64,000 nucleotides of DNA from Chara braunii (GCA_003427395.1 BFEA01000023.1:5676945-5740944); one strand, 5' to 3'. Shown: positions 7,415 to 54,033, counted from the first letter of the stretch. Made by a program: numbers and translations. Notes: generated from the letters alone by a model not told the origin.

Positions 7415-7529
7415 GGGACGCTGGGCCCTGTTCCCAGCACGTGTTGCTCCCCACGAATAGATTGGAGCATTTGTCCCAAAAGGAAAAGAAAAGAAAAAGA
7501 AAAAAGGCGTTGTTGGTGCTCCTCTTCAG
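7415..7529 (-). ncRNA. Structured dispersed repeat (atypical hammerhead-like / pseudoknot), copy a
   Basis: Plus strand GGGACGCTGGGCCCTGTTCCCAGCACGTGTTGCTCCCCACGAATAGATTGGAGCA...GGTGCTCCTCTTCAG. Carries compensatory changes relative to the other copies. Confidence 0.5.
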
Positions 7530-7889
7530 TATGATCATCATCGTTATTTTGTCTTACTATCATCATCATCATTTTGTCATCATTAGATGCTACTCTTCAA
7601 GGCATTGTTTGCCTTTCTCATCAGCAGGTGAGTTGGTCGCCGTCATCACCATCCTCATCCTCATCATCTTCAGGGTGTTGTTCATTGTTATCAGCAAATC
7701 CAAAAAAAAGAAAAACATCATCTACCTTTCTCCATTACAATTTTCACAAATTTTCAATTCTTCCACTCATGTCTTAGGAATTTTATTTCCTAAAACTCTT
7801 GAGGCTTGTTTTTTCTTTTCTCCACTGTTAATTTATGATTCCCCTTTGGGCGCACTAATGAATTTTTTTTGTGCGTGTGGGGGGTCGGG

Positions 7890-8630
7890 GTTTTAAGGAG
7901 GAGAGCTCTACTCCGTAGGGGCTCCACAAGGTGGGGGATGAAATGCCCTGGAGGGAGGGGGGGCAGATTTTTGGGGGATGCCCTATTCTGGGGTTATGAG
8001 AGATGTATGGGCTAGCATCATATTCCAACGGAGGCAGATAGGGGTGAAAGGTTGGTTGAGGTATACTTTGGGTGGAATTGGATCCCTTAATGGAAGTAGG
8101 GGGAGGAAGCAGGTATGTCCAAGTTGGGGCCAATAAGGAAAACTTGTGATCAGGGCAGTCCTTTTCGGTCGAGGCAACAGAGGGACAGGGGGAGATGGAG
8201 GGAAGGGGGAGGAAATAATCCACAGCAACATCCGGAATTATGATTCTCCTCTCAAGCATAAACAGATTACTACTGGTGGGGTGGTGGGTTGGTTCTGAGG
8301 GGGAGAGCTCTACTCTGCAAGGACTTCATAAGGAGGGAGGTGATTGCCATGAAGAGAGACGGGGCAGATTTTGGGGGATACTCTATTCTGGGGTCGGGGG
8401 AGATGTATGAGTCGACATCATATCCCAGCGGTGGCAGATAAGGGCAAGGGGTNGGCAGAGGCATACTTTGGGTGGGAACTGGATGCTTTTGTGGAAGTAG
8501 GGGGGGGGGGGGAACGGGTCTGTCCCAAGTTGGGGCTGATGAGGAGTGTTCGTGATCAGGGGCAGTCCTTGTCGGTGGAGGCAGCAGTGGGGCAGGGGGA
8601 CGAGGCGAAAGGGGGGAATTTCTATATCCT
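7890..8630. repeat. Tandem duplication of a ~400-bp G-rich unit inside the gypsy element
   Basis: GGAGAGCTCTACTC...GGGGCAGATTTTGGGGGAT...GTGATCAGGG(G)CAGTCCTT occurs twice (from ~7900 and ~8302). Confidence 0.75.
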
Positions 8631-9271
8631 TTGCTTGTATTTGGTTGGGACTTCTTAAGATTCTTTCTGGAATTTTCAAAACAATCCCCGTTGTTATTGC
8701 TGGTAATTTGAAGAATCTCTCAGGACTCTTAAGCGACTGCTGGTGGTTTGTACGAAGTTGCACTGGAATTAGACTGTTATATTCAGGATCCATGGTTGTT
8801 CCATGCCAGAACGACGATGGTCGGAGCCGGGGTGATGCCCTGTAACTTGCCAAAGGTGAGGGCATGAGGCCTTGTAGAGAGATATGGGGATGCTATGCAG
8901 AGGCATCCTAAGGGACAGTTGGAGGTCGCTGACACAGGACAACACTGGTCCAAGGTGGAGTGAGTATCATTGCTCTGTAACCTAGCGGATAGGGGGCGTG
9001 AGGCATGGATGAGTTTGTCAAAGAATTAAGTCAGTTTTGGTGAGGTTTGTAAGGATCTGTTGGAAATCCTTTAGATACTTTAATGTTCAGAGAATTGCGG
9101 TGGATTTCAGGAGGTGTTTAGCGATTGTAAAAAATGATTCGTAGTTTTCTCATCATCCATCCCCATTTTTAGTAGCTTGTTCATGATCTTGGAGGATACT
9201 CTCAAGTCAAAAACGGGTAATGGCCCCGGTACCTCAATTTGTTCATAAATTGTTTTTACATGTCTTGATAT

Positions 9272-9326
9272 GGGACGCTGGGCCCGATTTCCGGCACTTG
9301 CTGCTCCCCACGAATATATTGGAGCA
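9272..9326 (-). ncRNA. Structured dispersed repeat, copy b (partial)
   Basis: GGGACGCTGGGCCCGATTTCCGGCACTTGCTGCTCCCCACGAATATATTGGAGCA followed by an A-run. Confidence 0.5.
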
Positions 9327-9449
9327 TGTCTTCAAAAAAAAAAAATTGTGTGTGAACTCTAATCCGATTTTTTTTTTTTTTTTTAAACAAATTATTAATT
9401 GGGTATGGCTGGCGCAGCAGCCTCTAGCTTTTCTGGGAATAAAAAAGGC

Positions 9450-10560
9450 AAGAATCCTTGGTTCCCAACACCGTCATTGAGCTGGAAATTGAGGAGGAGG
9501 CGGCTGCAGAAGAAAGTCGCAAGAGGATAGAGAAGTTGTGGAGAGAGATGGAGGAAGGCGAATGAAAGGCACTGAAGGAAGTCAGGCAGGCAGTGCTGGC
9601 AGAACATTTCCTGGCCGCTGAATCTAATGAAAGATTCAGCGACACTAACAGAAAAATGGTTGAGTGGATCCGGTTGGAGTTCACTTCAATCAAAGATGCC
9701 CTCACTGCGTGGATGGACCGGGTTGCTGGAATAGAAGACCATTTGACTACAGCAGAAGCCAAACAGTCTTTTATTGTAGAGAACCTGGATCGAATCGAGC
9801 AACTTCTCAGTACCTCTCCCCACTCAGCCACCTCTACCCCTCGTCAATCAGTCAAACCCTACCCCTCATCAATCAGTCAAACCCGAATTCAAACTGGTCC
9901 TTACTCCCCCTTCAACACCACACTTTTCTCCTAAAGGAAGGTTTGCTTCGCCTAATGAGCAACAAACTGTCCCTGGGGATGTGAGACTGCGTACTGGCAA
10001 CTCAGGTCAGCAGACAACGTTTCCCCAAGATGATGCAACCTGAAAAATGTCAAAGTGGATGTGCCAGATTGGATAGCTTCAATCAAGTCCTATCTGAGGG
10101 GATTCGTCTGCCCAGAGGCTAACAAAGTGCAGTCCAATGTGGCCCTATTTAGTGGGTCAGCATTGAAGTGGGCAACCTTTGAGGCCATCAAGTCTCAGCA
10201 GAAGTTATCAGATTGGGATGATGCAACAGGATTAATGACCATCTTCCAGTGCCTGGCGGCAAGGTTTGCAGACAAAGAGAAGGCTAGCAAAGTTGCAGAC
10301 GAGCTGGTTAGTCTCGGCCAGACAAAGTACAGGAGTTCGTTGACCAACCTGTATGCAAAATTTGAGCGCCTCACCTCTACTCCCGGTTTGCAGGACACAA
10401 GGATTGGCAGTCTTTTAACTGAGCAGCCTTGGACATGGAGGCAACACTCCATGTTCAGCACTCCCTAAAAGGAAGGCAACCCCTCTTCCCAGAGCAAGAG
10501 GAAGGGAGAGGGGAACTTGTATACTATGGAGTCTGATAATGACTCTGCAGACACTGACTA
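9450..10560 (+). pseudogene. gag: Ty3/gypsy gag remnant
   Basis: Coiled-coil N-terminus, then DVPDWIASIKSYLRGF..SALKWAT..LAARFADKEKASKVADELVSLGQTKY..LYAKFERL (retrotransposon gag pattern). Interrupted by stops. Confidence 0.75.
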
Positions 10561-12549: not shown

Positions 12550-15500
12550 CATGCTAAAACCTCAAATTAACAGCACCAGGATCAAAGTTTTGCTTGACTG
12601 TAGGGTCACAAGGAACTTAATTTTTCAAGATTACTGACCTTGAGCACCATACAGGTAGGGAATTCCCAATCTGTCTTAGCCAAGCAAGTCATCAAAGGTG
12701 TGTCAGTCACCTTTGATGACAAAGGGAAAATCTGACATTCCTTGAATTTCTATGTTTTTCCCCATCTTCCCTTTAATCTGGTCCTAAGTCTGCAGTGGTT
12801 AAGGGCTGCTAACCCTTAAATTGACTGGGCTCTGCCCAGTGTTCAATTGAAGAATTTTGAAGGCGAGTTAAGACAATGTGTCTTAGCTATTGACCATCAA
12901 AATAAGACAAGCTGTTACTATCTGAAAGTCAGGAAGTTTTACAACTTGTTTAAGGAAACTGACCATCAGAAACTGTTTATGGCTTATGTCACTCAAACAG
13001 ATTCAGATTCCTCCCCTTCTCAGATTGATCTGTCCATTCAACAGGCGGTTGATGGGTTTTCTGTTTCGGTTCGGGAGCTTACTGGATTGGTCCATAGGCA
13101 AACCAAGCACCATATTCAGATTTCACCTGACTCTACCCCTCCCAAGGGAAGTGTTTATAGGATGTCACCTGCTGAACTGGATGAGCTAAGGAAACAAAAG
13201 GACTCCTTGACAGAGACGGGTTGGATCAGGTCCAACTCATCTGAGTTTAAAGCACCAGATTTCTTTGTTCCAAAGAAAAATTGTGAGCTCAGGATGTGCA
13301 TTGACTATAGTGGCCGGAACAAGATCACTAGGAAGAGCTTTGAGCCGTTGCCTATGATCGATAATCTGTTGGACATAGTGCACAGCAATACCCGGTATGA
13401 CACCTATGAGTTCATAGCCATGCCTTTTGGTCTGTGCAATGCACCAGAAACATTCCAGACTGAGATGAATCGCATTTTCATACCTTTCCTTGTCCGTTTT
13501 GATGTGTTGCACCTGGATGATATTCTGGTACAACAAAGATGCCAAGGAGCATGTAGACCACCTCATGAAGGTTCTGCAGGTCGCGAGGGAACATAAGTAC
13601 AAACTGAATAAAGAGAAATCATTATTTGTTGCTTCCTCTGTATTGTATTCAGGTCATGTGATTTATGCAGATGATCTATCCCTCAAGCTTCTAAAGTAGC
13701 TGTTGTCAGGGAATTAATTACCATAACCAAATATTGTGAGGGACATCAAATCTTTCATGGGTTTAGCCTCTTAGTACAGGAAGTTCATCAGAAATTTCTC
13801 CTCTATCACTACACCCCTGACAAATCTGCAAGCCAAAGACGTTCCGTTCAGGAGGACTGTTACTTGTCAATTAGCTTTTTCAACATTGAAGACAGCACTT
13901 ACCCCGACACCTATGTTGAAACTACCTGACCCTACCTTGCCATTTGTATTGACCACAAATGCAAGTCAATATGATGTCGATATAGTACTTCAGCAAGATA
14001 ATGGGACCGACGTGAAACCGGTGGCATTCATGAGTAAGAAGATAAAAATGCAAAGAATTTACGCATCTCCATATGAGAAGGAACTGTATACTCTCGTTTG
14101 TGTCATTAAACAGTGGAAGCGTTCTTACTTGAGAGACACTAAACCTTCCACCTTCAATGGAGGAAGACCCAAGTTGAGTTAAATAATAAGTTATCGAGGT
14201 ATATGCAGTTCATTGATGGGTTTGACTTTGAACTGAAGCACAAGAAGGGATGCTCTAACAGAGTTGCCGATGCATTGTCTCGTAGACTTGATTCTTTCGC
14301 AGTTATTGCTAATATTTAATATTTTGTTCAATCCACCAGACAAGTCATTGTTGATGCGTTGCCTCAGGATCCAGTCTTTGGCCCCATTCTTAGGAATCTA
14401 CAGGCTGACCTCAATTCTTACTCAGGCTATGCTCTGACTTCTAGCTTGTTGTACATAATCAACGCGGAGGAAGAACATTTGTGCATCCCTAATGATTTTG
14501 CAAGATTATTACTCATCCGATTTCAGAGAGTCATCATGCTCGCAGACACTTTGGGTTCTTAAAAACGTATGTTGCCCTTACCCAATGTTTCTATAGGTCT
14601 AAAATGAAGGACCACATCCTGCATTACTTAGAGACATGTGAATTGTGCCAATGAAATAAGGTCAACAGAAGACCTACTCACACGCTTACCTATCTCTGAC
14701 GGTCCACGTGAGTCAGTATGTATAGACTTCACAAACCTAGGCAAAACCACATCTCGTGGAATGAGATAGGTAATGGTTTGTGTTGATCGATTCTCTTAGC
14801 ATGTTGAGATTATCCCCTTACCTGCTGAGGTCAAACTACCTCTGGTCAGAGAGCTCTTTTGTGAGGGGTAGGTAAATGTCCATGGGTACCCAACCTTCAT
14901 TATCAGCAACAGAGATCCCAGATTTTGCAGCGATAATTGACAGTCTTTCTATAAGGATTACCTACATTCTAGATTGGACATGACCTCTAAAGAACATTTG
15001 GAAGCCAATGGACATGCTGAGGTAATGAATCAAATCTTGTTTCAATTGTTGCGTCCTCTGATCACACCTGGTCAACAAAATTGGGGCATATATCTGTCAC
15101 AAGCACAACTGATGTACAATACATATGTTCATAGCATTACAAGCTTTACACCCTACAGGCTGCACTTTGCAAAAGACCCCAGACAACCTCTTGATGATCT
15201 GAAGGACACCCCAAACAACCTCTAGATGATCTGATTGACAAGTCTTAGCCTAGACTAACTCCTGGCACTGCATAGTTCACCAAGATTTATGAGAAAGACC
15301 TAGAGACTACAGGCTTTACACCCTGCAGACTGCACTTTGCAAGAGACCCCAAACAACCTCAGGATGATCTGGATGATCTACAGGAGACCCCAGACAACCT
15401 CTGAATGATCTGATTGACAAGTCTTGGCCTAATCTAACTCCTGGCACTGCAGAGTTCACCAAGAGTTATGAGAACGACAGAGACTACAGGCTTACACCCT

Positions 15501-16105: not shown

Positions 16106-16111
16106 AGAGGG

Positions 16112-17679: not shown

Positions 17680-18900
17680 CTTCGCTGAAGCTGGCAGGTA
17701 TATTGAGAGAGAGTTTTTCGGGCTCGCTTGCGGGTTTTATATTTGCGAGGAGGAATAGAATATGAGGAAGAGTGGAGTGGAGATTGGAGGGGGTGAAAAT
17801 TGGGTTAATCGCCCCGGGAAAGCCATACCGATCCCTGCAAGTTTCTTTGCAGCCAATCAGATCACAGTGTGCAGGAAGTATCCTCATTACACGATATCGT
17901 CTGTCAACTCAAAATTTTGAAAGGAGATTGAAGGGGAGTTCCTATATGGGGATGAAGGCAGGAAGGAGGAGCGCGCAAAAAACAGCACGGAGCAGGTCCA
18001 AGATTCAAACGAGTAACGGTGCAACGTGAAGGGGATGGAAAACAGTTACGGGTGTGAGAGAAAAGGCGAGAAGAGGAGGGTAAAAATGGCATGGGTCCTT
18101 GCAGGAAGCGAAAAAAGATTGCATGCATGGTGTCGATGTAGAAAAGAAAACGACACCGAAATAATTAAGCTTCATCCATTCTGGTTCTAAAGCTACTTCA
18201 AGATTCAAAAATTCAAGAGCAGTATCATAACGCAAAAAGGAAGACCGCTTCTGGTCCATACCACGACGCTCCCGTACTGACCAAACCTCTATGGGAGCGG
18301 TTCGTTGCGACCTGGCCAAGGATGATTTTTGGATCCGCTGCTTGAGATTTTGGCGCCAGCTCCCGCTACCAGACAAACCCGGGCCAACCAGGTGGGAGGA
18401 GGTGGCTAGATAACCCTTGTATGGGATCGTAAATATTACGGAACGGAACGGAAGGATATACTGCAGTTTGGACTTCCCCCAGAGCAGTTGGGTCAAGAAA
18501 GCCATACTTAAAGTTTAGGACATCTAGGATTCGAAAAACAAGGAATGGAAAACGGCGCCACATATGAGGACGTTAATGAAGCACTATCACAACATAGAAA
18601 CGAATCTGGAATAACTGATCTTTGCAATCCCCCTGCGTTGGGTGCACATTTTGCGCAAGGGACCGAGGCTGGTGGAAGGGGATTTGGTTGCCGCTCCAGG
18701 AACCCGAAGAGGATAAGGAGCGTTGTAGAGGTAGGCTCGGATGAAACGTTGGTTAATCTTTTCTACAAAGGAACAGGTAGTGTGCGAACTTGATACACCC
18801 CGAACGTGATGAGATGATGGTGGAATGCCGACTTGCATAGGATCCGGGTGTTACAAAATAAGAAAGATTGGATAGCATACTGGTCGGAAACCTGTCTTGC
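17680..18900 (-). mobile_element. Possible highly decayed Penelope-like element (RT C-terminus, Cys linker, GIY-YIG-like)
   Basis: Frameshifted FVTPGSYASRHSTIISS..FVEKINQRFIRAYLYNAPYPLRV resembles the PLE RT thumb region. Further downstream are HCDLIGCKETC, LPHILFLL and SQYTCQLQRS. Weak, by eye only. Confidence 0.3.
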
Positions 18901-19861: not shown

Positions 19862-20400
19862 CTGTCCATGATGGACACGCCATGTGAAGCGGAGTGAGTA
19901 GGCCAGAAGCATCAACAGATGTAGTGTATCCCAAAAGGTAGGGGGAGGGAGGAACCAGTGTTTAGCAGCAGGTATCTGGCACCAGGTTCAGGGTGAAGAG
20001 GTTTCCCCCCCCAAGATCCTGCTCAGTCAATCCCCTGGACCCCAGGGTAATCAATGCTGGCAGGAGTATCCCGCATCTCTGTTTTTCTGATATGTTCTGA
20101 ATTCTGTCCATGGATGGGACTCTGGACCCATTATCCAGCAGGTGTTGCTCCCTGCCCCAATAGATGGAGAGTGAGTAGGCCAGAAACATCAATATAGGTA
20201 CTGTATCCCAAAAGGTAGGGGGAGGGGAGGAACCAGTGTGTAGCAGCAGGTATCTGGCGCCAGATTCAAGGTGAAGAGGTTTCCCCCCACAAGATCCTGC
20301 TCAGTCAATCCCCTGGACCCCAGGGTAATTAATGCTCGCAGGAATTGTCCATGAATAGGATTATGGACCCGTTATCCAGCAGGTGTTGCTCCCCAGAGTC
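19862..20400. repeat. Tandem repeat, ~2.2 units of ~240-280 bp, carrying structured-repeat copies c and d
   Basis: GAGTGAGTAGGCCAGAA...GTATCCCAAAAGGTAGGGGGAGG...CAAGATCCTGCTCAGTCAATCCCCTGGACCCCAGGGTAAT occurs twice. Confidence 0.8.
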
Positions 20401-20460
20401 CCTCCAATAGATGGAGCCTCCCCGCAGGTTGCTAGCAGCGTCTGCTCTTATCAGCACCAC
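20357..20460 (-). ncRNA. Structured dispersed repeat, copy d (partial copy c at 20116-20169)
   Basis: GGACCCGTTATCCAGCAGGTGTTGCTCCCC...CCAATAGATGGAGC...GTCTGCTCTTATCAGCAC. Confidence 0.5.
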
Positions 20461-20639
20461 TAGCACTAGCGCAAAATTGAGCTCACAAAAATTCTGTCTA
20501 TCTAGCTTCCTACAGAAAATAGGAACAACAAGAACTCAAGCTTTAGAAGAGCTGTTCGGGTTCGAAAGCTGGTACATCACAACCGGAGGACCATCTGGAA
20601 GTTTTGGTTGTAGTAGCTATTCCTGACATGACAAAGTGC

Positions 20640-23187: not shown

Positions 23188-23276
23188 TCACCCTTCTCAG
23201 CCCTTTGGCTAAGATCGAGTGTAGTATCCATTCCGATCAGTTCAATATATCTGCTCCCATGGTCCATTGAACCATC
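23188..23276 (+). pseudogene. U2: Degenerate U2 snRNA retrocopy (3'-truncated after stem IIb)
   Basis: CCCTTCTCAGCCCTTTGGCTAAGATCGAGTGTAGTATC... matches the U2 5' end, including the branch-recognition GTAGTA. Confidence 0.8.
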
Positions 23277-23488
23277 ATCATAAATGAAAATGAAAGGACA
23301 AATATTTTATGCCTCAGCAATCATGCACAGCTTATGTCAGGGTTTCTGTCAGGGTTCTCTGCGCTGACAGTCATTTCAACCACCACTGCTCCACAGCCTA
23401 TTGGTTTTCCCAACTTCGGAGCACCAGGCCTCAAAGTTCTGGGCCCGCCGATAGCCTGGCCCCACCTACAGAGTGATTGTGTAGTTGC

Positions 23489-23868: not shown

Positions 23869-24323
23869 GGGAAAATTTTCGAAATGCCCCTGAAGTTTGC
23901 ATTAATTTGCGATTTCCCCCTCCGACGGCCGACTGACCCTGATTTGCCCCTGGGCCTCTGAACTTTCGAACAGGCCCCTGTCAGTGAGGGGCACAACTTT
24001 TTGGAATGCCCCTACCGGACAGGTAGTCCTATTTCCCCTGCTGCCTGTCCGATTTGCCCTTCTGTGGGGGATGCATCTTCCTGAGATGCCCTCCACGGGG
24101 AAGGCGCTAAGAATTTGAATTCCAACCCCATACTTTTCCAAGTCCCCGCGCAAAAAAAAAAGGCTGCACACCATGTTGTGTCCGCTGCTGCAATNNNNNN
24201 NNNNNNNNNNNNNNNNNNNNNNNNNNNNNNNNNNNNNNNNNNNNNNNNNNNNNNNNNNNNNNNNNNNNNNNNNNNNNNNNNNNNNNNNNNNNNNNNNNNN
24301 NNNNNNNNNNNNNNNNNNNTCCA

Positions 24324-26138: not shown

Positions 26139-28120
26139 GAAAANNNNNNNNNNNNNNNNNNNNNNNNNNNNNNNNNNNNNNNNNNNNNNNNNNNNNNNNN
26201 NNNNNNNNNNNNNNNNNNNNNNNNNNNNNNNNNNNNNNNNNNNNNNNNNNNNNNNNNNNNNNNNNNNNNNNNNNNNNNNNNNNNNNNNNNNNNNNNNNNN
26301 NNNNNNNNNNNNNNNNNNNNNNNNNNNNNNNNNNNNNNNNNNNNNNNNNNTTTTTTTTTTTTTGAAGGCCCTTTGTGCAATCCTCTGTCCACGTCTCCCA
26401 ACTTTTGACTTAATTTTTCTGAGACGTTTCCCTAACACATCAATACCAGAGTTCTTCGTTGAACCGCCAGTTCACACAACCCTCCGTTGACAATGTGACC
26501 TTCCACGGCTTGTGCCTCGTGCCTCCAGCTTTCATCTCCATAGCGACCGTCCCTGTTCGCTACCAGCCCACGCATGCAGCATGTCATAGCCCCGGCTCTG
26601 CTTCGGACGAAATTAAGCTTCAAAGCTTGTGCGCCACAGACTTACTGTGCAGAGGCTCATCTTCGCGGGAACCGAGGCTTCAAGGCTCGCGGCCCACGGA
26701 CGCACTGTGCATATCTTCCCTGGAGGAGTGTCTATGGCTCCACAGCAAAAAGCTTTGTTTTTTCATGTTATATAATGATCCTCTGCCTTAGCTGGACAGG
26801 TTGGCTGTATGTGGCCGAAGCCACACGTTTATCAGACCAAAGTCACAAGCGCTCTGGAGCACAAGAAGACTGAACCACCAGACTGGACTGGACAACCACC
26901 CCTTCTCCCTTCTCGACGAAAACGTCTGAACTTCTGCCTGCATACAAGGAGAAGACGAGACATGGATAGGGCCAGCAGCAAGGGCCCAGGGGAGGCTGAA
27001 CCAGGTGCCATTATCAGGGCCCCGCTGAACTATGTTCATCCGCATTGTCTTGCGGTCTATATTGCAATAGACACGGAACCACCATTGTTTTAGCAGCCGA
27101 GACTGCCCCGTCCAAGCATAAACCCAAAAGCTCTTCGTATAGACGCCGATAAACAAAAGCCGAGACTGGCCCGTCCAAGCATAAACCCAAAAGTACTTCA
27201 TATAGACGCCGATAAACAAACTGAAAAGCTCCTACGGAGCCCGACCCAGTTGTTTGCCCAAAAGGTCAGAGAGCCGTCAGACATAAATAACTAGTCCACC
27301 TCATAGAAATGCGGCCTACGTTTCTCATAGCCGATAGGTAGGAAGGACGCTGGGGCAGGGACAGAAAAAAAATGGGGGGCAAAAGGATGCCCCTCACATC
27401 TCGCCAAATGTCGCAATTGGATGTGACGAAGGGTGTCACCATCCCCACATCAGACGGACAGATGCAGAGTGTCGGGCAAAATTTTATCTGACAGTTTAAG
27501 GTCTGCCGTGCTTCACCCGAGTACCAACTTATGGTCATTAGTGCTCCATCACATTTAGTACATAGACTAAAGATACCCCAAGCACAGCTATAATGAGCGT
27601 ACATTGAACTAAGGCAAAAGAGGACCAATAGCACATGCGGCGATTAAGCGTGAAAGATACCAGACCAATGCAATACATACATTTGGCCCGAAAGATACCC
27701 CAAAGTTACGCAAACACAGCTATAAGGATTGTGCAGCACACGTCGTATTCAGGTGAAGAAGTCAGCGGTCTGATAACAAAATGGTGGCCTTGTCGGTCTG
27801 CGCACCATTTTGAAACCTCCATTTGACTGACTCCCATCGGGAAAAAGTCCCAATACATTCATAATTTCATATATACAACGCGTGGCCCAAATTCTCCCTC
27901 GGATTCTCTAATTGTCATCCAATGCAGTTAGAAAACTAGTGGTTGAAATTTGAAATTCGAAACCACATGTTCACTGAACGAGCAGATCCCGTTCAAAATC
28001 TGAATGGAGTAGAGCTCCGTTCGAAAAACGGAGTTCAATCAATTGAACTCCCCCACGGATAATCAGAACCAGTCGCCGCAATCAGACGGCTGTATAAATA
28101 ACCAAACATGATGTATCAAT

Positions 28121-28217
28121 GGGACACTGGACCCAGTTTCTAGCAGGTGCTGCTCCCCACCAATAGACAGAGCCTTCCCGAGAGTGATAGTGTTGTCTGC
28201 TCCTATCAGCGCATCCC
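28121..28217 (-). ncRNA. Structured dispersed repeat, copy e (full length)
   Basis: Minus: GGGATGCG-CTGATAGGA-GCAG...CTGC-TA-GAAACTGGGTC-CAGTGTCCC. Confidence 0.55.
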
Positions 28218-28460
28218 TATCACCATCTCGGCTGTTCTTCTTATAAAGAAAGTATTAAAAAAAAAATCAGGTCCCAGAAGGCTGCAAAAAAAAAGAAGAA
28301 AAAAAGAGGGGGTGCATAGGATGTTGAATGGCACATCCCCATATTTGTTGTTTTATTTCTGGTGACTTGTTTTATATTTCAAAAAATCAAATACAGAAAA
28401 AGGCGCCGTCAGTGGGTTATGCTTGGTTTGGGGTTGTTTAGAGGCAGGAGGTTGGGCTAT

Positions 28461-32060: not shown

Positions 32061-32551
32061 ATAAAAAAAAAAGAGGAAAAGTCCCTAGTCATGACCCGCC
32101 AGGCAATTTACCGGGGGTCTGTCTCAGGGCATGCCCCTAGTCATGTACTAGAAGAGAAAAAAAACGGAACTTAGCAAAGAAAGTATAATTGAAGGAATGA
32201 GCATATACAAATTAGATCCATGTACTTTCTTTATAGGTTTAAGATTGTTCTTATTCACAAATATTATACCACGAAAATCCCGTATGTGTGTGTGTGTGCT
32301 TGGGCGTGTGTTTTGTCATATTCGCTATACACTCGAAAAAAACATGACTGCACCAGACTGTTTCATCGGACTTTCACACAGAGAGAGAGAGAGAGATGAG
32401 AAAACGTGCACGCATGCATCTGTGTATGTTTGTGAGAGAGAGTGAGAAAGAGAGAGAGAGGGAGAGAGAGAGAGAGAGAATGTGCATAAGTGCCCCTGTG
32501 TGTGTGCGTGTGTCATCATATTCACTATACACTTAAGAAGCATAAGAGTGC

Positions 32552-32608
32552 CAGATCGTTTCGTCGGACTTTCACCGGCTCATCAGGAGGTTGAACCCCG
32601 ACAGTCTA
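32552..32608 (-). ncRNA. Type III hammerhead ribozyme (family B)
   Basis: Minus: TAGACT-GTC^-GGGGT-TCA-ACCTC-CTGATGA-GCCGG-TGAAAGT-CCGAC-GAA-ACGATCTG. The conserved core is complete, with one mismatch each in stems II and III. Confidence 0.8.
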
Positions 32609-36961: not shown

Positions 36962-38506
36962 TCCATTTATTGTTATGAGTGTGAGAGAGAGAAAGAAATA
37001 GAGAGAGAGGGANNNNNNNNNNNNNNNNNNNNNNNNNNNNNNNNNNNNNNNNNNNNNNNNNNNNNNNNNNNNNNNNNNNNNNNNNNNNNNNNNNNNNNNN
37101 NNNNNNNNNNNNNNNNNNNNNNNNNNNNNNNNNNNNNNNNNNNNNNNNNNNNNNNNNNNNNNNNNNNNNNNNNNNNNNNNNNNNNNNNNNNNNNNNNNNN
37201 NNNNNNNNNNNNNNNNNNNNNNNNNNNNNNNNNNNNNNNNNNNNNNNNNNNNNNNNNNNNNNNNNNNNNNNNNNNNNNNNNNNNNNNNNNNNNNNNNNNN
37301 NNCGAGTACTCCAATTTTCAGGTTTTTTCACGCATTCTTCTGAGCGTGAAAACTCACTGAATTTGGAGTACTTTTTTAGTTGGCCCAGGCATGGCTGAGT
37401 GGCAAAAATAGAAAATGTGCTGAATCGGCGCGACCATTATTTCGCAGTCTAAAAGATTTTTTGTAAATGTTCTACTATTATTTCTGGAAAGAACACGACC
37501 TCATCTATGGATTCTCAAAATTTCAGATTTTTGTGCATGTTCGTCTTGACCTTCCTTTTAGGGGTCGGCCTCAACCCGAGGACCGGTCCTTGCTTTTTCC
37601 AAAAGTCCCTGTCATTCGAGTTCTAGAGCTGCCTGTTCCCAGCCCTAAGGCTGCAGTATAGTGTGCTTCCGCATCTGTGTCAAGGTGTCGCATTTTTGGC
37701 GGGGGGCGACCAGGACGCAAAGTGGGTTCTTAGGGGGCAAAAAAATTTGGGGGACCGGTCCTCGCCAAAATTGCGGACTACCTACAGCTAGTTCTTCTAG
37801 AACCGGGACTTTTGGAAAAACGAAGGACCGGTCCTCGGGTGGAAGTGGAACCCCAAAAAGAAGTGGGGGGCATTTGACCAGTCCTCGAGTAGGCGGACCA
37901 AGAAGTGAGGGCATGTGAACTGCAAAAGGGCCCTCAGGCCCAGGCGTTGAGCCCCGTCTTCTCAAAACAGGGAGGTCAGGCACAACGAAACAGGCATTTT
38001 GCAAGAGGCAACTTTGGCGATTTTCTGTGCTCAGAAGAACATGCACAAAAATCTGAAATTTTGAGAATCCATAGATGACGTCGTGTTCTTTCCAGACTTT
38101 GGCGATTTTCTGTGCTCAGACGAACATGCACAAAAATCTGAAATTTTGAGAATCCATAGATGACGTCGTGTTCTTTCCAGAAATAATAATAGAACATTTA
38201 CAAAAAATCATTTAGACTGCGAAATAATCGTCCCGCCAATTCAGCACATTTTCCATTTTTGTCACTCAGCCATGCCTGGGCCAACTAAAAAAGTACTCCA
38301 GATTCAGTGAGTTTTCGCGCTCAGAAGAATGTGTGAAAAAACCTGAAAATTGGAGTACTCGTAGACTTTGTTGTGATCTTTCCAGGAAAAACGCTACATA
38401 AATTTTAAAAAATCATTCCAACTGCGAAATAGATTGCGGCCGCAATTTGACCCATAAATTTTGCCATTCAGCCTCTCTCTCTCTCTCTCTCTTATCAGCA
38501 AATGGA

Positions 38507-38785: not shown

Positions 38786-39635
38786 GTAGACAATGAAGAA
38801 CGTCCAGGCTGTCATGGCTGGCACCTCATCTTTTGTGGCTCAGCAGTCCAGGATGCCATGGCTGGCTTTGCCGATCCAAAACAAAGCGCTGAAGCCCCAG
38901 TTCTATCTGTTTTTGGGCGCACGGCTCAAATTCACTAGTGGTTGAGTTCAAATAGCAAGCATTTCCGAGAATGGGCCATATTTGAGTCCAGAAGTATATT
39001 CCAATGCTCACATGTCCTGCCTCTGGATGCATTGCCACGCCACAGGGATGGAGAAAAATTGTGACCTAGACCCCCTCTCCACCCTCGCATCATGATCACA
39101 GACACATGCAAGAAGGGCACCCTATGGCCTTGAACCAGCAGTGCAACAGCCCCCGCACCCTAACCCCCCCCCCCCTCCAATCTCGCATCATAATCACAGA
39201 CACATGCAGGAAGGGCACTCTATCGCCTTAAAACACCAGTGCAACAGCCACCGCACGGCGCACTGAAGAGTTCAGTCATTTACGAGTACCCGGCAGTGTG
39301 AAAGTGCTACCACCGCCATTTTTGTGAAGGCCTGCACTTTAAGTTCTTCAAAATGCATTTTTTGGTTCATTGATATAGCTTTGGATGGACTGGTGGTTCA
39401 ACTACCGCTTTCCAGTCTGTGGAAGACCTCAGTCTTTTCGCATCATGATCTGATTCCCCCCCCAACTCGCCCACTTTCTCACAAATGGTTGCCCCATCAC
39501 TTCCACAATATACCTTCACATGACATTACCACATACGAACTCATCTCACATTTTGGGCTGAGCATCACAACCTTGATAGGTGCTTAAACATAGTAGGGTT
39601 TTTTTTTTTTTTTTCACAACTGGTTGGCCCTGATA

Positions 39636-39717
39636 GTGCTGGTGATACGAGCCTCTTCACGACTACCAAGCCATCCGTTGGCTCCGATCTATTGGTGGGG
39701 AGCAACACCTGCCAAAT
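39636..39717 (+). ncRNA. Structured dispersed repeat, copy f (opposite orientation)
   Basis: GTGCTG-GTGATACGA-GC...GGCTCCGATCTATTGGTGGGGAGCAACACCTGC. Confidence 0.45.
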
Positions 39718-39914
39718 CACATACAAAGAGTGCTGTGAACTTGGCTGTAGCCAGCCTCCCCTCCTGCCCCATTTCCTCGGTGCTATGCTGGCTGACTAGG
39801 TAGCCCAGCCCCCTGATGGTAGTTTTAACATCCCAACAAGAACACAGACACTGTGGTTTACACACAACACATGTCAGTCAGTCTCAGTCTCACAGAGCCT
39901 TCTAGCTTGAACCT

Positions 39915-41173: not shown

Positions 41174-41400
41174 TATGAGGACTGATGAAGTGCAGCAACG
41201 AATGGTGGGGGCGTGCGGCTTGGAGTGTCGAACCTGAGAAGAGGCGGTTGGGGGGAAATTGTGGCTGTGATTTCCAGGTCCTGTAACCGACAGGACCTGG
41301 AAATCACAGCCACAATTTCCCCCCAACCGCCTCTTCTCAGGTTCGCCACTCCAAGCCGCACGCACCCACCATTCGTTGCTGCACTTCATCAATCCTCATA
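41174..41400. repeat. Near-perfect 227-bp palindrome (111-bp arms, 5-nt loop)
   Basis: TATGAGGACTGATGAAG...CAGGTCCTGT-AACCG-ACAGGACCTG...CTTCATCAATCCTCATA, with 3 mismatches counted by eye. Confidence 0.95.
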
Positions 41401-43446
41401 CCTGGGCCCTCCACTTTGCCATCACCCACCCACTTTGTTGTCGTCATAATTGCATCCTGGTCACCCATTGTTGTCAGTAAGTGAGAGAGAGAGAGCGGAA
41501 GGCTGGTCCTCCTCGTCTCTCCTCCTCCACATTCGTCATCCTTCCTCATTTCCCTTATCCACTTCCTCCTCCTCTCCTCCTTCCTCCTCCCTCCTTTTTG
41601 CACACCACACCAGCAATTTTTTCTTGTCAATCACTCCTTCGCCGCCACCCTCCCGTCCTCCTCCTGCCGCCTCCTCCCTCCTCCATCTTCCTTCCTGTTC
41701 CTTCCTCCTCGCTCCTCCTGGTCTCCAACTTGGTCTCCAATCCTCCCTCCTCCTCCTTATCCGCTGTGCTCCATAGTGGGAGGAGAAAAAAGGAGAGAGG
41801 AAGGACGAGAGGAGACAAGGATGGACTACGGAGAGGAGAGGGAGGGAGGAGGACACAAGGATAGAGGAGAGGGAGGGAGGAGGACACAAGGATAGAGGAG
41901 AGGGAAGGACAAAGGAGGCCACACAAATTCACCTTGCCCGACTTTTCGATCTCTCCTCCTCCCTCATTGCTCTTCTTCACCTCCTCCCTCCTCCTTCCTC
42001 CTCTGCCTGCAGTCCTTCCACCCTCCTTCCGCCATGTGGCACAGCGCCAGCTGCACCATGCATTTTTTTCCATTTTGTCGATTTCTCCTCCTCCCTCCTC
42101 CTCCCTCTCCCCTCCTCCCTCCTTCCCTCCCTCCCTCCTTCCTCCCCCTTCCTCCTCATCTTCCGTCATCTTTCCTCAAAATGACAACTCCCACACCCCC
42201 AGAAAAGTCTCCAGAAAATCGGGGGGAAAAAAGAACTCTCCAGCACACACCCCGGTGACCCAGGTGGATGCCAGGCGCTCTGCCCTCCCAGGCACACCCG
42301 ACCGGGTGACTTCATAGCACAAGTCAAGTCACCACAGTGTCCACAATACATGAACTCTTCTCCACACAGTCCTGACTCCAAAATAAGACATTTCAAATCA
42401 CCACCGCCCCCAGCACCGGCCACAGCCTGTGGATATACACACCGATCGCAGGATGGGCAAATCTACCGACTGTTGAGGGGCAACGCTTCAGGACACAACT
42501 TCAGAGTGCCTGTGGATGCACACCACTGCCCCCAGCTTCCAGCGATTTTCATGATTGTTCTTTTTGACAATGCATTCCTAACAAGATCATGAAATGCTGA
42601 CTAAATGCCAATGGGTTAGCGAAGACTTAAGGTCAAAAATAACAATAAAAAATGTAGCAAGTGGGAAAAAAAAGGCTATCGGGCAGGAAGACATATCGTA
42701 ATCCCCATGCTGTCACCTACTGTCTAGACCCAAATAGAACACCCAGTCATTTTTGACGCATCTGGACTGCAGCTTACACCAAATACAGCTGCAATGATCG
42801 GGCATTCTATTCGGGTGAAGACGGTCGGGAGAGGTTTGTGTGGCTGAGATTCTCCTTGGACAAGAACTCCGAGCAGAGAGATGGACGTTCAGAAAAGTAA
42901 TTATACCCATAGAGGCTTCTCATCCTGGAAGCCATTGGGCGGAAAAAAATAAAGAGGACCGGGGATTTGCCACTACAGATGTCGAATTATCCAAGTGAGA
43001 AGTTCCAGTCATTCTGCTTTTCTGTGTTGTGCAGTCTCCTGCCAGACAATAGCCAATAGGGCGACTGTTTCTGCATCAGGCAAGAAAGACAAAATTCCGC
43101 AGCTTTGTCCGCCAGGTGCAATACCGCCTCAGACACAGGAGGGCCAAGAGGCACAGATGAAGAGAAGCTGCATCTCTGCTGTCCATGTCCAGACATCCAC
43201 GAGTGGAATCTTGGTCGTTGTTTTTAGCCTGCATGACTTACATGCCACAGGACCAAATGGGGGAGGAAGGGATAAACAGGGGAGAGAAGAGGGGAATAAT
43301 CAGAGTGAACAGAGAGGAAGGACTGTCCCACCACATACAGCACACATGCATCCCTGCTTTGAATTCTCTTCTACCCTCTTCGGCCTCCCTGCACTCCCCA
43401 AAAAAGGAAATGAAAAAAAAAGACATGAGACAAATTATGATGCATT

Positions 43447-43549
43447 GGGACGCTGGACCCGGTTTCCAGCAGGTGCAGCTCCCCACCTATAGAATGGAGT
43501 CATCCAAAACACGGGCCAGTAGAAGGGGTGTCTGCTCTTACCAGCATCC
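43447..43549 (-). ncRNA. Structured dispersed repeat, copy g (full length)
   Basis: Minus: GGATG-CTGGTAAGA-GCAG...CTGC-TG-GAAACCGGGTC-CAGCGTCCC. Poly-A follows on +. Confidence 0.55.
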
Positions 43550-43737
43550 AAAAAAAAAAAAAAAAAAGAGAAATGGGCCTGTTCAGACTGCCCATACTCC
43601 AACCGCCGACTATGCCTGCTCTGCCAGACTAGCACTATAAATAGACACTGGGCAATTGCGACAAGTTTAACCACAGGCTGATCGGCAAATGGTGGCATTT
43701 AAAGCTGCCAAAGATGGCACAAAGCAGTTCTACTCAC

Positions 43738-43913: not shown

Positions 43914-45083
43914 CTGCATGTGGTCACAATCAAAGCGTGCGTCAGAACTTGTGACATACCAATAACCATTACATTACATAACAGTAGTGTTCAAAGCTGA
44001 ATTACAACGATGGGCCAGTTGATAGAGGGATGTTGGATAGGTCCGAATAATAAGGACGTTGAGGACCGGAGAAGGAGTCCATCAATCATCACTAACATAC
44101 AGACNNNNNNNNNNNNNNNNNNNNNNNNNNNNNNNNNNNNNNNNNNNNNNNNNNNNNNNNNNNNNNNNNNNNNNNNNNNNNNNNNNNNNNNNNNNNNNNN
44201 NNNNNNNNNNNNNNNNNNNNNNNNNNNNNNNNNNNNNNNNNNNNNNNNNNNNNNNNNNNNNNNNNNNNNNNNNNNNNNNNNNNNNNNNNNNNNNNNNNNN
44301 NNNNNNNNNNNNNNNNNNNNNNNNNNNNNNNNNNNNNNNNNNNNNNNNNNNNNNNNNNNNNNNNNNNNNNNNNNNNNTCAAAAAAGAACAGGTTCTTCTG
44401 CTTAGAGTGTGTACTGCCATCTTCACCCAAACAGAACAACATGTGGTTATTATAGCTCTATCCAGACCGGAAGTTGCCCTCATACAACTTTAACGACCGG
44501 GTGTTCTATTCCAGTGAAGACAGTTGAGCAACAGCTCGTCCTGGACATCAATATTATGCACACTTGCACACAACAACACCCTGAAGATTCAGCAATGCCA
44601 ACTAAAATGGGTGACAGCAAGTGAATGGAGGAAGAGAGGCAGGCATCAGACACGTGATGCGCATCACACAAGTGAAACACAACAGATACCCAATTGCATG
44701 ACCAGGTTGCATTACACCCTAAACTGGACGAAGACAAGCCTAGAACCTGGATCCACAGGACACAGGGCCAAGTAACCCAAGTAGCCGCAAACGCAGTCCT
44801 AAAGATTACTGCCCCACTTGGATGACGACAACCAGATGCATACTTTCCAAGTTTCTATACAAAGTATTCACGATAAGCAAACTTAGCAGTGTCCACTCAA
44901 AGCATATGATACAGATAGTCGAGCAATATGAGAAAATTCCCGGTAGCAGAACCTCAGTCTAAAGAACTGACCTTCACAAAGCAAAGAATCAACACTGTAT
45001 AAACAGAACCTGAAGTAAGGCAAGTAATCATGCACCACGAGAAAGGGTCTAGAGATTAAAGAACCTCTGTTCAAAGAACTGAC

Positions 45084-51251: not shown

Positions 51252-52904
51252 GCCGGACAAGCAGACTCCATTGGTTTCTGGCCGTAGCTTAAACACTCCT
51301 ATCAATCCGCTGACAAGTGATTACCAATATCATTAAAGCCCTCTATATCGTTTCCTTCCTCCCCACCCAGCCCTTGCCCCCCTTGCCCACTCACAACCTG
51401 CACACATCATCCTCAACAGGCACACTCCGCTGCGCAAGCTGACCCTATCACGGGTTGCTGGCCGTACCCTGGAGAGTCTGCCTTGTTGTCCCTACACCTC
51501 CTCCCTCTCCCAACTGATAAACATCACTCTCGCATCAACAGCCCAGGATCCGCCTCATCGTCCCCCCTCCTCCTCCCTCCCCCCGCTGATATAGAAACTC
51601 TCGCATCAACACCCCACACAACATGCTCCACCTGCACAAGCTCATCCTAATAGGAGCTGCTGGGCGTACCCTGCAAATAGTCCTGCCAGCGATGAACGTC
51701 TCCCTCTCGCATCAACACCCCACACGACATGCTCCACCTGCACAAGCTCACCCTATTAAGGAGCTGCTGGGCGTACTCTGCAAAAAGTCCTGCCAGCGAT
51801 GTTCTCCCTCTCCTCGAATCCTATATCGGGCTCCTGGCAGGACGCTGCAGAGCCATGCCATTGATAAGCTCATCCTATAAGGAGCTGCTGGGCGTACTGT
51901 GCAAATAGCCCGGCAGCGATGTTCTCCCTCTCCTCAAGCTGATCCTATATCGGGCTCCTGGCAGGACGCTGCAGAGCCCTGCCATTGATGATCCTCCCCC
52001 TCCACTTCCCATGCGAACCACAACCCTCGCACTCGACTCATTCACACCCAATCGCAGTAGCAGCAGGCCGTACCCCACAGAGCCCTCATTCTGCACTTCA
52101 CTGACTTTTTTTTCCCCTAACCAAAAGACTGCTCCTTTCTGTTCGAAGGGAGCGGCATGTGCTGGAAACACAAGTGGTTAACAGGTCCGAAAATCCTGAA
52201 AAACTAAGAGTTTTGCATGAAAACACAATTTTAACCCCCTTGGTCCAATTTTTTAACCTTTTTTTTTGCTGTCCGTTTTCTTGGTGTCCAGTCTATGGAC
52301 TGGTGACAAGTCTGGCTTCAAGGCATTGGATATTTGTTATAATGAGCCTGGAAACACCCTGAAATTTAGGGCTCTGTTAACCATCTCTCGCTGGAAAACG
52401 AGGCCCACGTCCCTGAAAACAAGAGCAATACACCCATCCACGCTTCCCCGCATTACGGTTCAGGGAACCCTCACAGCATTGATTGCTTACTTCAGGAAAG
52501 ACTACTGCCAGCACACCCATACCACCGAACCAGGCCCCTCCCAAGCTCACAAAAACCCTTCAAAGCACCAGTACAGTACATGGCCCCAGTGAGAATCCAA
52601 TTGAGCCTCTCCTATAATTTCGGAGGCTCCAACAGGGCGTCCAAAGTGCCGGTGCAAAAACAAAAAAGAGGGTCTTTGGGAATGGGAGAGCGCGGCTAAC
52701 ATCAGCATCAGCTGAGATCAGCTGTACGCGACACATAGACACTGCAAAACAACCTACCAGAGTATGTGAAAACTCGGAAATGTTTAAACTCTTAAGAAAA
52801 TATGAATGATAAGAAAGAGTAGCTCTTCGAGAGAATGACATTAAGCTCCAAGAGAGGCCATAGCCAAGCTATGGTGTGAACCATCAGTCATCGCAATGGC
52901 GGTC

Positions 52905-52982
52905 TGGCTTCCCTCCACCAGTTTCAGCTAGCGCCAGATCTAGCCTCATCAGGAGGGGATAACTCTGAGGTAATAGAAAGGT
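52905..52982 (-). ncRNA. Degenerate type III hammerhead in the 3' region of a Penelope-like element
   Basis: Minus: CTTTCTATTA..GAG-TTATCCC-CTC-CTGATGA-GGCTAG-N8-CTAGCT-GAAAC-TGGTGGAGGG. The cleavage triplet is degenerate. Confidence 0.55.
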
Positions 52983-53334
52983 AAAAACCTCTCTTAAATA
53001 GTGAGTCTCTCAGTCACTTCCCTTAGGTTCTACAGCCTTAGGCAGGAACTCTTCTCGTAGACCCGAAAATTGAAAAAGCACGGTAACTCTGTGGCCTGAA
53101 GGTCAGTTCTCGGACAAAACGTTTTGAGTAACACCGAGATGACGTAAGTCCGCCAAAAAAATAATAAATCCTAAAGTTCTGAAAAAAGCTAACTCAGTAT
53201 CTGTAGGGTCAGTCTATGACCTACAGGTTTGTCATCTTCTGAAAACGTTTACGAAAGAGAGTCCTACGGAAAAGAGATTTTTAAGCTTATCCCACGGAAA
53301 AGATTTTACTCAGTGCGCATTCTACTGGGGTAAT

Positions 53335-53540
53335 TATTTCTACGTTATAAAACCGCTAGTGTCAGGACTTTTGTACTATCTGAAACGTAAAATATCCTGT
53401 AGATTTTCAAGATCTGGGTAAATATTCCTACGTTACAAAAACGTTAGTGTTACAAAAACGTTAGTGTTACAAAAACGTTAGTGTCAGGACTTTTGTACTA
53501 TCTGAAACGTAAAATATCCAGTAGGTATTCAAGATCCGGG
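53335..53540. repeat. Tandem duplication with internal 17-bp repeats in the PLE 3' region
   Basis: TAGTGTCAGGACTTTTGTACTATCTGAAACGTAAAATATCC twice; GTTACAAAAACGTTAGT three times. Confidence 0.85.
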
Positions 53541-53547
53541 TAACTTG

Positions 53548-53980
53548 CTATCTATAATATTTTACCAGCCACAGAACTTCTTTCCCCAAGCGTCCCACGA
53601 TGGCGCTCGTCTTCGGATAAATTTCCCCAGGCACTCGTCGAAGTACTTGCCTGGGTTTCCTTACAGTCGTAGCAGTCTCTTCAGGGTTAGTAGTCCCAAT
53701 CCAATTAGTTCCACCTCCGAAGTCATTTGGTAGAGTCTGTGTAGACAACTCGTAATCACCGCCTTCTTCTGCGTGATTGCTGAGTAGGACGAGAAATCCT
53801 GTATTGTTCTGAAGGCAAGTACGCCGTCTTTCCAAATGTCATTGAAGTTCTTCAGAACTAACTGGGTCGTCACTTTTCTCCCTGTTTCAATTTTAGCTAC
53901 CACTCTAGACCTCTCCGCAACGAGCCGGATATTGTTCCCGGCAAGTCGATTCTATTGTTGTTATCTGCCTTCCTACTGCT
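53548..53980 (-). mobile_element. Penelope-like element RT C-terminal remnant
   Basis: IDLPGTI (degenerate DFLG)..KNFNDIWKDGVLAFRTIQDFSSYSAITQKKAVITSCLHRL..LKRLLRL*GNPGKYF matches the PLE RT thumb pattern (SY...KRAVI.S.L.R...GYP). Confidence 0.65.
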
Positions 53981-53988
53981 GATTATAA

Positions 53989-54033
53989 GGGACGCTGGAC
54001 CCATTTTCCAGCAGGTGAAGCTCCCCACCAATA
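53989..54033 (-). ncRNA. Structured dispersed repeat, copy h (partial), abutting the PLE remnant
   Basis: GGGACGCTGGACCCATTTTCCAGCAGGTGAAGCTCCCCACCAATA. Confidence 0.5.

Follow-up and report, generated by a model that had tools for sequence, protein, structure and literature searches.

A repeat dispersed through a 64,000-nt stretch of the Chara braunii genome (the window) is very probably the structured 3′ UTR tail of one poly(A)-ending, L1-like lineage of non-LTR retrotransposons (LINEs). Its location, strand, conservation and compensatory changes are directly supported by the data, and the strand that functions is the plus strand, which corresponds to the sense RNA of the element. A sequence-only reading, which did not commit itself to one strand, had as its headline a non-canonical, hammerhead-like ribozyme variant on the minus strand, a proposal that strand, sequence boxes, covariation and Rfam searches fail to support.

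All eight copies in that reading (a to h) lie where it had put them, and profile and covariance-model searches identified two more, at 2809..2758(-) and 52185..52131(-). Extended to other Chara loci, taken from GCA_003427395.1 and given L numbers here, the covariance model returned 26 matches in 284 kb including the window. The nhmmer E-values of the copies range from 1e-8 to 1e-16 and the 23-nt pseudoknot core had no match in shuffled sequence, so a chance origin of the repeat is excluded. A metagenome scan found three more copies on two small contigs (BFBZ...), and a collection of prokaryotic genomes contained no copies of the module. Assembly gaps at 24195-24319, 26144-26350, 37013-37302 and 44105-44377 touch none of the copies, the nearest being 535 nt from copy g, and thus no result hangs on continuity across a gap.

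The copies have in common a module of some 54 nt. Read 5′ to 3′ on the poly(A)-bearing strand, it consists of GGGAC, a 6-bp hairpin (GCUGGA/UCCAGC) with the loop CCCNNUU, a single A, and a probable H-type pseudoknot in which stem 1 is GGUG/CACC, loop 1 has 2 nt, stem 2 is GCUCC/GGAGY and the A-rich loop 3 is AAUAGAU. Longer tail types continue from the module into a second, long hairpin (H2), whose conserved loop is YUGCUCUUAYCAG, and then into poly(A). The plus-strand alternative offered in the sequence-only reading is supported: a hairpin, then an H-type pseudoknot whose loop 3 is rich in A, and downstream A-runs. The hairpin variants (GGA/UCC versus GGG/CCC) and pseudoknot variants (GGUG/CACC versus CGUG/CACG) that it listed are real.

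Individual copies differ mainly in what follows the module. Copy a (7415..7468, +) is a complete 54-nt module of subfamily II, with the hairpin GCUGGG/CCCAGC and the pseudoknot stem CGUG/CACG, and scores 75.9 bits in the covariance model; GUCCC and an A-rich tail (7478-7505) come after it. Copy b (9272..9345, +) joins a subfamily II module (9272-9325) to A12 (9334-9345) through an 8-nt spacer. Copy c (20116..20170, +) terminates a decayed LINE and forms, with copy d, part of a local duplication of about 241 bp. Copy d (20357..20469, +) has a 9-nt insert in pseudoknot loop 2 of its module (20357-20417) and an H2 at about 20427-20469, with the loop at 20441-20455. Copy e (28121..28266, +) comprises a module (28121-28173), a long H2 (28178-28231, loop 28196-28210) and A10 (28257-28266), and copy g (43447..43567, +) a module (43447-43500), a short H2 (43525-43549, loop 43531-43545) and A18 (43550-43567). 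In copy f (39599..39734, -), the pseudoknot is intact (39712..39681) and precedes a variant H2 (about 39673..39626) and A16 (39614..39599). Its similarity to the other copies starts only about 20 nt into the module and its first hairpin lacks the 5′ arm, as expected for a 5′-truncated copy. Copy h (53989..54069, +) has a decayed 3′ arm of stem 2 in its module (53989-54042), directly followed by an A-rich tail. As for the two additional copies, copy i (2682..2809, -; 25.7 bits) begins with GGGAC and a third covarying hairpin variant, GCUGAG/CUCAGC, after which a different tail module, shared with L005:19165(-), replaces the pseudoknot and leads into an A-rich tail; copy j (52106..52185, -) is a decayed module that has lost its 5′ part and ends in A8.

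This layout does not bear out the description of the repeat as conserved ends around a variable middle, since only the 5′ ~54 nt are common. Just three of the ten window copies have CTGCTCTTATCAGC, the 3′ end that was taken to be conserved, and this sequence is the loop of H2, a covarying hairpin. The 3′ block TCTGCTCTTATCAGC occurs in three window copies (at 20441, 28196 and 43531), with a diverged version in copy f. Mean pairwise identity is 0.79 in the module, compared to 0.49-0.55 in 55-nt flanks. Conservation starts sharply at G1, upstream of which runs the loosely conserved sequence TGATGYATYCAA. Homology upstream of the module has variable, subfamily-specific lengths: detectable similarity fades 10-35 nt upstream of GGGAC in most copies, and it is longer between copy b and L004 and between copy c and L008. 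Conservation so far above that of the flanks points to a selected fold.

The pairing pattern is consistent with such selection. Paired cells make up 90.4%, compared to 85.2% in shuffles, none of which reached the score (0/500), and 20-47% when the pairing was slid. Across the hairpin and stem 1, the two helices counted with the tool, three pairs changed on both sides, over 13 cells: hairpin pairs 10-35 and 11-34 (14 AU, 7 GC, 3 GU) and one pair of stem 1 (12 GC, 5 CG). Stem 1 is Watson-Crick in 58 of 64 cells. Because loop 3 is either 7 or 8 nt long, MAFFT and the first covariance model misregistered the 3′ arm of stem 2, and we therefore counted this stem with a hand-anchored parse, which gave 63 Watson-Crick and 5 G-U pairs in 75 cells with no both-sided change. 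Support for the H-type pseudoknot is thin, with one covarying pair in stem 1 and none in stem 2, and the GC/CG flip, which one subfamily has together with the hairpin variant, probably arose only once. Loop lengths of 2, 1 and 7-8 nt would plausibly be compatible with a pseudoknot on steric grounds. The stems of H2 have wholly different sequences between copies, yet they are always paired around the same loop.

Two features of the surrounding sequence give the strand. A run of 6-27 A follows the module on the same strand in 16 of the 18 copies examined, and three copies that are independent and diverged have, in the same orientation, a remnant of a non-LTR reverse transcriptase (RT) 1.3-1.9 kb upstream. 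(Mismatches in decayed copies are nearly equally G-U (11) and A-C (9), so wobble pairs are uninformative on strand.) The three remnants are at 18318..18704(+) in the window, 1.4 kb upstream of copy c; at 889-2893 in L001, with its module at 4837; and at 21654-20460(-) in L005, with its module at 19165. The window remnant is colinear at the protein level with L001 2483-4039, where a module also follows, and tblastx traces this colinearity over about 1.5 kb, down to the module. From the end of the RT to the poly(A), the distance is about 1.5 kb in L005 and about 2 kb in L001, which bears a 74-nt duplication. The complete LINE 3′ end in L013, which has no module, spans 1.27 kb. Given an RT upstream on the same strand in three diverged copies, we assign the motif to the 3′ UTR tail of a LINE lineage, which upholds the suggested link to RT-encoding elements. 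The sequence-only reading had also described copy h as abutting a Penelope RT remnant, and here Pfam gave no match among ORFs of at least 45 aa between 53.5 and 56.4 kb. When ORFs preceding the copies and those near copy h were compared with Pfam, the only matches were to RVT_1, at 62014-63207 and 12847-13593, and the ORF that ends at a TGA just upstream of the module is not a conserved reading frame.

The best matches of the window RT ORF are Chara braunii proteins, some with Exo_endo_phos and RVT_1 or with zf-RVT domains. The RT of the element is 25-48% identical to Chara non-LTR RTs bearing Exo_endo_phos or zf-RVT, and its own zf-RVT match (E=0.0033) falls below threshold. Because an intact full-length element with this tail was not recovered, the L1-clade assignment rests on this distant RT similarity and the one sub-threshold zf-RVT match. 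A PDB sequence search with the L005 ORF and a word search with the L001 ORF gave no match. A word search with the L005 ORF retrieved a single Chara protein; its LINE (L013) has another kind of tail and lacks the module. The module is absent both from the L013 lineage and from the 62014-type LINEs in L001-L006, and it is therefore linked to one LINE lineage only.

Most genomic copies are probably dead, 5′-truncated insertions. They would have arisen by target-primed reverse transcription starting at the poly(A) end, and such truncation would account for the tail turning up much more frequently than the coding region. A search for target-site duplications at the copies found none. We also considered a MITE, and rejected it: each copy has a polarity, its poly(A) being confined to one end, and no flanking direct repeats were found. 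By analogy with known LINE tails, the fold likely serves in “stringent” 3′-end recognition, in which the element's own ORF2 reverse transcriptase would recognize it and thereby pick its own RNA as template. Tentatively, the recognition domain may even be closed, with a terminal helix GGGAC/(G)UYCC enclosing the hairpin, pseudoknot and H2 and the whole read by an L1-type RT; (G)UYCC directly precedes the poly(A). We consider this closed form possible but doubtful.

Precedents for such tails are known. Conserved, covarying 3′-end hairpins occur in L1-clade LINEs of plants and green algae, as well as in stringent LINEs (PMC3472496, PMC4176376); the examples of Ohshima 2012 include monocot lineage 1a with ZmSINE2/3 and Chlamydomonas L1-1_CR with SINEX-3_CR (PMC3472496). 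Like these green-lineage elements, the Chara element ends in poly(A) and is apparently L1-type, its most conserved part is a short 3′ block, and it shows compensatory stem changes and conserved loop letters, features read there as stringent template recognition (PMC3472496). In contrast to them, it has a different tail sequence, a streptophyte alga as host, and a richer architecture, in which two hairpins flank a probable H-type pseudoknot where the others have one hairpin; the L1-clade systems have SINE partners (PMC3472496), while the Chara tail is linked here to a LINE alone. Eel UnaL2 and zebrafish ZfL2 likewise place a structured RNA just upstream of a 3′ repeat and vary the stems while conserving the loops, and their tails direct template choice by their own RT, with ORF2p binding experimentally shown (PMC4176376). 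These, however, are L2-clade elements with short tandem repeat ends and a single stem-loop (PMC4176376), while the Chara tail is known from sequence alone. The R2 3′ UTR RNA, also a multi-helix domain with pseudoknotting, directs binding and target-primed reverse transcription, which is how this non-LTR RT selects its template (PMC11194090). R2 differs in being site-specific, in its restriction-like endonuclease and in its larger 3′ UTR fold (PMC11194090), and it has no sequence similarity to the Chara tail. The literature searched does not describe this tail. Our results add a streptophyte alga with a poly(A)-ending LINE lineage whose 3′ tail is selected and combines several helices (hairpin, pseudoknot, hairpin). 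They are relevant to the question of whether L1 elements of the green lineage used stringent template recognition ancestrally, and they provide a clean annotation handle for a very abundant Chara repeat. If true, the closed-domain arrangement would be direct structural evidence for Ohshima's proposal of stringent recognition in the ancestral green-plant L1, with a pseudoknot like that of R2.

Other origins for the module can be weighed against a LINE tail. Among the short copies (65-140 nt, a module with poly(A)), some if not all might represent a non-autonomous retroposon in its own right, SINE-like or a tail-only parasite borrowing the LINE tail. SINE/LINE pairs with a common 3′ tail are the rule for stringent LINEs (PMC3472496), and both the sharp start at G1 and the loss of similarity within 10-35 nt upstream fit a short unit. 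We nevertheless find this unlikely: ARAGORN detects no tRNA in the window and there is no tRNA-like head, Rfam gives no 5S, 7SL or tRNA match at the copies, and copy f lacks the 5′ arm of the first hairpin. Furthermore, b with L004 and c with L008 continue upstream, c, L001 and L005 reach the RT, and LINE subfamilies are themselves expected to diverge upstream. Rather improbable, too, is another cis role for the plus-strand module in the LINE RNA, such as stabilization or 3′-end processing, nuclear export, or a novel ribozyme. These data indicate that the fold is selected without indicating what reads it, and long tails have the module 60-100 nt away from the poly(A) rather than at the very end. 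Against such a role, there is no similarity to any Rfam family and no sign of cleavage, and the module is kept across tails of very different length and content, which is the pattern of RT-recognition tails (PMC3472496, PMC4176376). HDV-like, twister and pistol folds, inspected by eye on the plus strand, were discarded for their unfit helix order and for the lack of an Rfam match. Retropseudogenes or template-switch chimeras of a ~55-nt structured cellular RNA would give a constant 5′ block fused to varied poly(A) 3′ parts, as observed, but they are extremely unlikely: no Rfam family matches, the block has a fixed position downstream of the LINE RT in three copies, and TGATGYATYCAA runs on upstream of G1. 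The Rfam searches covered the window, L007 with L008, and 201 nt around copy g, and found no family at any copy at either gathering thresholds or E<=10.

The minus-strand proposal was a self-cleaving, type I hammerhead-like ribozyme with 3-4 nt in place of N7 and two extra nucleotides before G12, which we now regard as very unlikely. In its favor, Penelope-like elements of the Chara genome carry real hammerheads, Chlamys-2 among them (PMC8557442), and the window itself holds a separate canonical candidate at 32553-32607(-), with 38.4 bits. Helix I (8 bp), helix II (4 bp) and GAAAC-CGG-GUC can all form on the minus strand of copy g, where this fold is the MFE. However, copy g reads CUGG rather than CUGA, and the 9-bp P1 that had been claimed is good, and nearly intact, only there; pairing ranges from 5 to 8 of the 9, P1 is in the MFE only in g, and of the five long copies, four pay 3.6-9 kcal/mol when it is forced. 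None of these five has CUGANGA and an adjacent GAAA both in register. Their boxes read CUGAUAAGA (d, L008), CUGAUAGGA (e) and CUGGUAAGA (g), none of them CUGANGA in register, and copy a has a chance CUGAAGA with the other half absent. The GAAA-box equivalent comes after two extra nucleotides; its sequence is GAUAAC in copy d and, in subfamily II, GGGAAC. The supposed 5′ half of the ribozyme is present in only three of the ten window copies, helices I and II in at most three or four, and stem III pairs 11-17 and 12-16 show no covariation, with only 14/23 and 11/24 cells paired on the hammerhead strand. The equivalents of G12/A13 and U16.1/C17 co-change as Watson-Crick pairs of the plain hairpin (pairs 10-35 and 11-34; GGA/UCC, GGG/CCC, GAG/CUC), which is the behavior of a helix and argues against a catalytic core. 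In addition, this strand is antisense to both the poly(A) tail and the LINE ORF, and at E<=10 the Rfam hammerhead models match none of the copies, whether the search covers the entire window, L007 and L008, or the 201 nt at 43400-43600. A decayed canonical hammerhead was rejected as well, its pseudo-core CUGAUAAGAGCAG being the complement of the conserved H2 loop. The antisense pseudo-elements do mimic the type I order and short helix III of Penelope-like hammerheads (PMC8557442), and both lie in non-coding ends of retroelements in one genome, but unlike those hammerheads they have no CUGANGA...GAAA in register, a core that covaries as a helix, the wrong strand and no Rfam match. The hammerhead-like pattern is a by-product of reading the helices and the H2 loop in reverse complement. 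This removes a false ribozyme candidate and shows that hammerhead-like box order can arise from LINE tail helices and a conserved loop when they are read in this way.

BLAST with the longest copies, a profile HMM and a covariance model recovered all eight copies of the repeat that the sequence-only reading had placed in the window: a to e, g and h beginning at 7415, 9272, 20116, 20357, 28121, 43447 and 53989 on the plus strand, and f at 39599..39734 on the minus strand. The same searches added two minus-strand copies, 2809..2758 and 52185..52131. Across the window and 13 collected loci (11 from the Chara assembly GCA_003427395.1 and two small contigs from a metagenome scan), the covariance model gave 26 matches in 284 kb, and the 23-nt pseudoknot core had no occurrence in shuffled sequence. 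Assembly gaps at 24195-24319, 26144-26350, 37013-37302 and 44105-44377 touch no copy, so continuity across them is irrelevant here. Only the first ~54 nt, the module, are common to the copies; it starts with GGGACGCUGG and ends in GGAGY, and a loosely conserved TGATGYATYCAA lies just upstream of its first nucleotide. The conserved 3' end previously ascribed to all copies did not hold up, as TCTGCTCTTATCAGC, with up to three mismatches, occurs in the window at 20441, 28196 and 43531 only, with a diverged version in copy f.

The repeat is a real, selected RNA structure, and its fold lies on the sense strand. From 5' to 3', the module consists of GGGAC; a hairpin, GCUGGA-CCCNNUU-UCCAGC; one A; GGUG; two nucleotides; GCUCC; C; CACC; AAUAGAU(U); and GGAGY. 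Across the hairpin and pseudoknot stem 1, pairing in the model alignment reaches 90.4%, compared to 85.2% in shuffles, none of 500 of which reached the observed value; slid registers are 20-47% paired. Three pairs show changes on both sides: 11-34 (AU 14, GC 7, GU 3) and 10-35 (GC 22, AU 1) in the hairpin and 41-64 (GC 12, CG 5) in stem 1. The GC and CG variants co-occur in one subfamily (copies a and b, and loci L004, L005 at 5954, L010 and L009 at 15752), and this linkage implies a small number of evolutionary events. Stem 2 hardly varies, with 63 Watson-Crick and 5 G-U pairs in 75 cells. The H-type pseudoknot is plausible, if thinly proven. Beyond the module, the longer tails have another hairpin, H2; its stem sequences are wholly different among copies with pairing always kept, and its conserved loop is YUGCUCUUAYCAG or UUCUCUUACCA. 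A covarying 3'-end hairpin with the loop CUCNUAUCA has been described elsewhere in the Chara braunii genome. Identity is 0.79 in the module versus 0.49-0.55 in the flanks, the same signature of conservation above the flanks that defined stringent plant L1 tails (PMC3472496). A tail variant at 2809-2690(-) in the window and 19165-19030(-) in L005 keeps GGGAC and the first hairpin but, in place of the pseudoknot, has a different conserved block, CCGGGU.GA.UGUGAGG.CCCCGGCCUC. These tails are built as mosaics whose modules can be exchanged.

Immediately ahead of the poly(A), the final 4-5 nt frequently read (G)UYCC, complementary to the module's opening GGGAC. At least four contiguous pairs can form in 6 of 16 scored copies (7 counting copy a), compared to 8% of all A-runs. 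Such ends occur at 9272 and 7415 in the window and, among the collected loci, at L008:124(-), L007:272, L001:4837 and L005:19165(-). This pairing suggests that a helix may close the entire tail, a lead drawn from related copies; if true, such a helix would account for the abrupt 5' onset of conservation.

Of the 18 copies examined, 16 have a run of 6-27 A downstream on the module strand, lying at +62 to +150. Upstream homology varies in length by subfamily, reaching about -10 in many copies; copy c matches L008 as far as -176, and copy b matches L004 over several hundred nucleotides. In copy f, BLAST similarity to the other copies starts ~20 nt into the module. The window holds no tRNA-like head. 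Together these features fit LINE copies that end in poly(A) and are mostly truncated at the 5' end, and fit neither a MITE nor a Pol III-headed SINE. Target-site duplications were looked for at the copies and none were found, so the shortest copies could possibly be a tail-only non-autonomous parasite. In L007 (272-545), two modules lie tail to tail around a single common A22/T22 run, indicating that one tail inserted into or beside the poly(A) of another.

The sequence-only reading had also proposed, on the minus strand of the eight copies, a candidate non-canonical hammerhead ribozyme. We rejected this on several grounds. That strand is antisense to both the poly(A) tail and the ORF. The supposed first half of the ribozyme (helix I 5' arm, pseudo-CUGA box and helix II 5' arm) corresponds to the H2 loop and 3' stem read as their reverse complement, and most copies lack these H2 parts. 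No long copy has an in-register CUGANGA, the sequences there being CUGAUAAGA, CUGAUAGGA or CUGGUAAGA. Helix I, which partly captured the GGGAC/(G)UYCC pairing, forms 5-8 of 9 pairs, and forcing it costs 3.6-9 kcal/mol in the tested copies except g. The would-be G12, A13 and U16.1, C17 letters pair with each other in the sense-strand hairpin and covary (GGA/UCC, GGG/CCC, GAG/CUC), which is the behavior of a helix and not of an invariant catalytic core. The two-pair stem III shows no covariation, its pairs forming on the hammerhead strand in only 14 of 23 and 11 of 24 copies, and Rfam hammerhead models gave no match at the copies at E<=10, including in a 201-nt search. The hammerhead variant is thus not supported, nor is the consensus a decayed canonical hammerhead, an outcome named beforehand.

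At three independent sites, a module is preceded on its own strand by a diverged non-LTR reverse transcriptase (RT) remnant: at 18318-18704 in the window (module at 20116), at 889-2893 in L001 (module at 4837) and, on the minus strand, at 21654-20460 in L005 (module at 19165). By tblastx, the window and L001 copies are colinear in five consecutive blocks that run as far as the module. In L013, where a related lineage has a complete LINE 3' end but no module, the poly(A) lies 1.27 kb past the end of RT similarity; the equivalent distance in L005 is close to this (~1.5 kb), and it is longer in the L001 and window copies because of local duplications. Copies c and d (20116-20470) are a local duplication of ~241 bp comprising the last ~190 nt of the LINE 3' UTR and the module, and L001 has a similar partial duplication of 74 nt (4763 and 4837). 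Tandem tail duplication may recur within this LINE family. The RVT_1 remnants at 62014-63207(+) and 12847-13593(+) represent a second Chara non-LTR lineage, without a terminal module at examined loci. The best matches of the RT-bearing ORF at 62014-63207 are Chara braunii proteins, some with RVT_1 plus an APE-type endonuclease domain or zf-RVT. No module was found downstream of this lineage at the loci examined (L001-L006), so the tail belongs to one lineage and not to every Chara LINE.

In a LINE lineage that ends in poly(A), the module forms a folded RNA domain under selection, on the sense strand and at the very 3' end. By analogy, the ORF2 protein may use this tail as a handle to choose the element's own RNA for target-primed reverse transcription. 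Template selection through the 3' tail by the element's own RT is established by experiment for stringent LINEs (PMC4176376), as is the same role of the 3' RNA for R2 (PMC11194090), and for the L1 elements of plants and green algae 3'-tail recognition has been put forward as a proposal (PMC3472496). The literature searched held no description of this particular tail.

The window contains other structured RNA features. At 32553-32607(-) lies a canonical-looking hammerhead (CUGAUGA ... GAAAC) that has no relation to the eight copies; it scores 38.4 bits against Rfam Hammerhead_3, whose gathering score is 48.5 (E ~1e-4). Two U2 snRNA matches exceed the Rfam gathering score, at 23189-23384(+) with 49.9 bits and at 31971-32086(+) with 90.5 bits; the latter fits the whole 192-nt model into 116 nt, which implies that it has lost an internal segment, and probably represents a pseudogene. 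At 41191-41383 (both strands) and 30550-30916 there are long, nearly perfect palindromes or inverted repeats with sub-threshold matches on either strand to precursor models of many plant miRNAs; MIR1858, for example, scores 120 bits where the gathering score is 137. In appearance they are foldback repeats and not miRNA genes.
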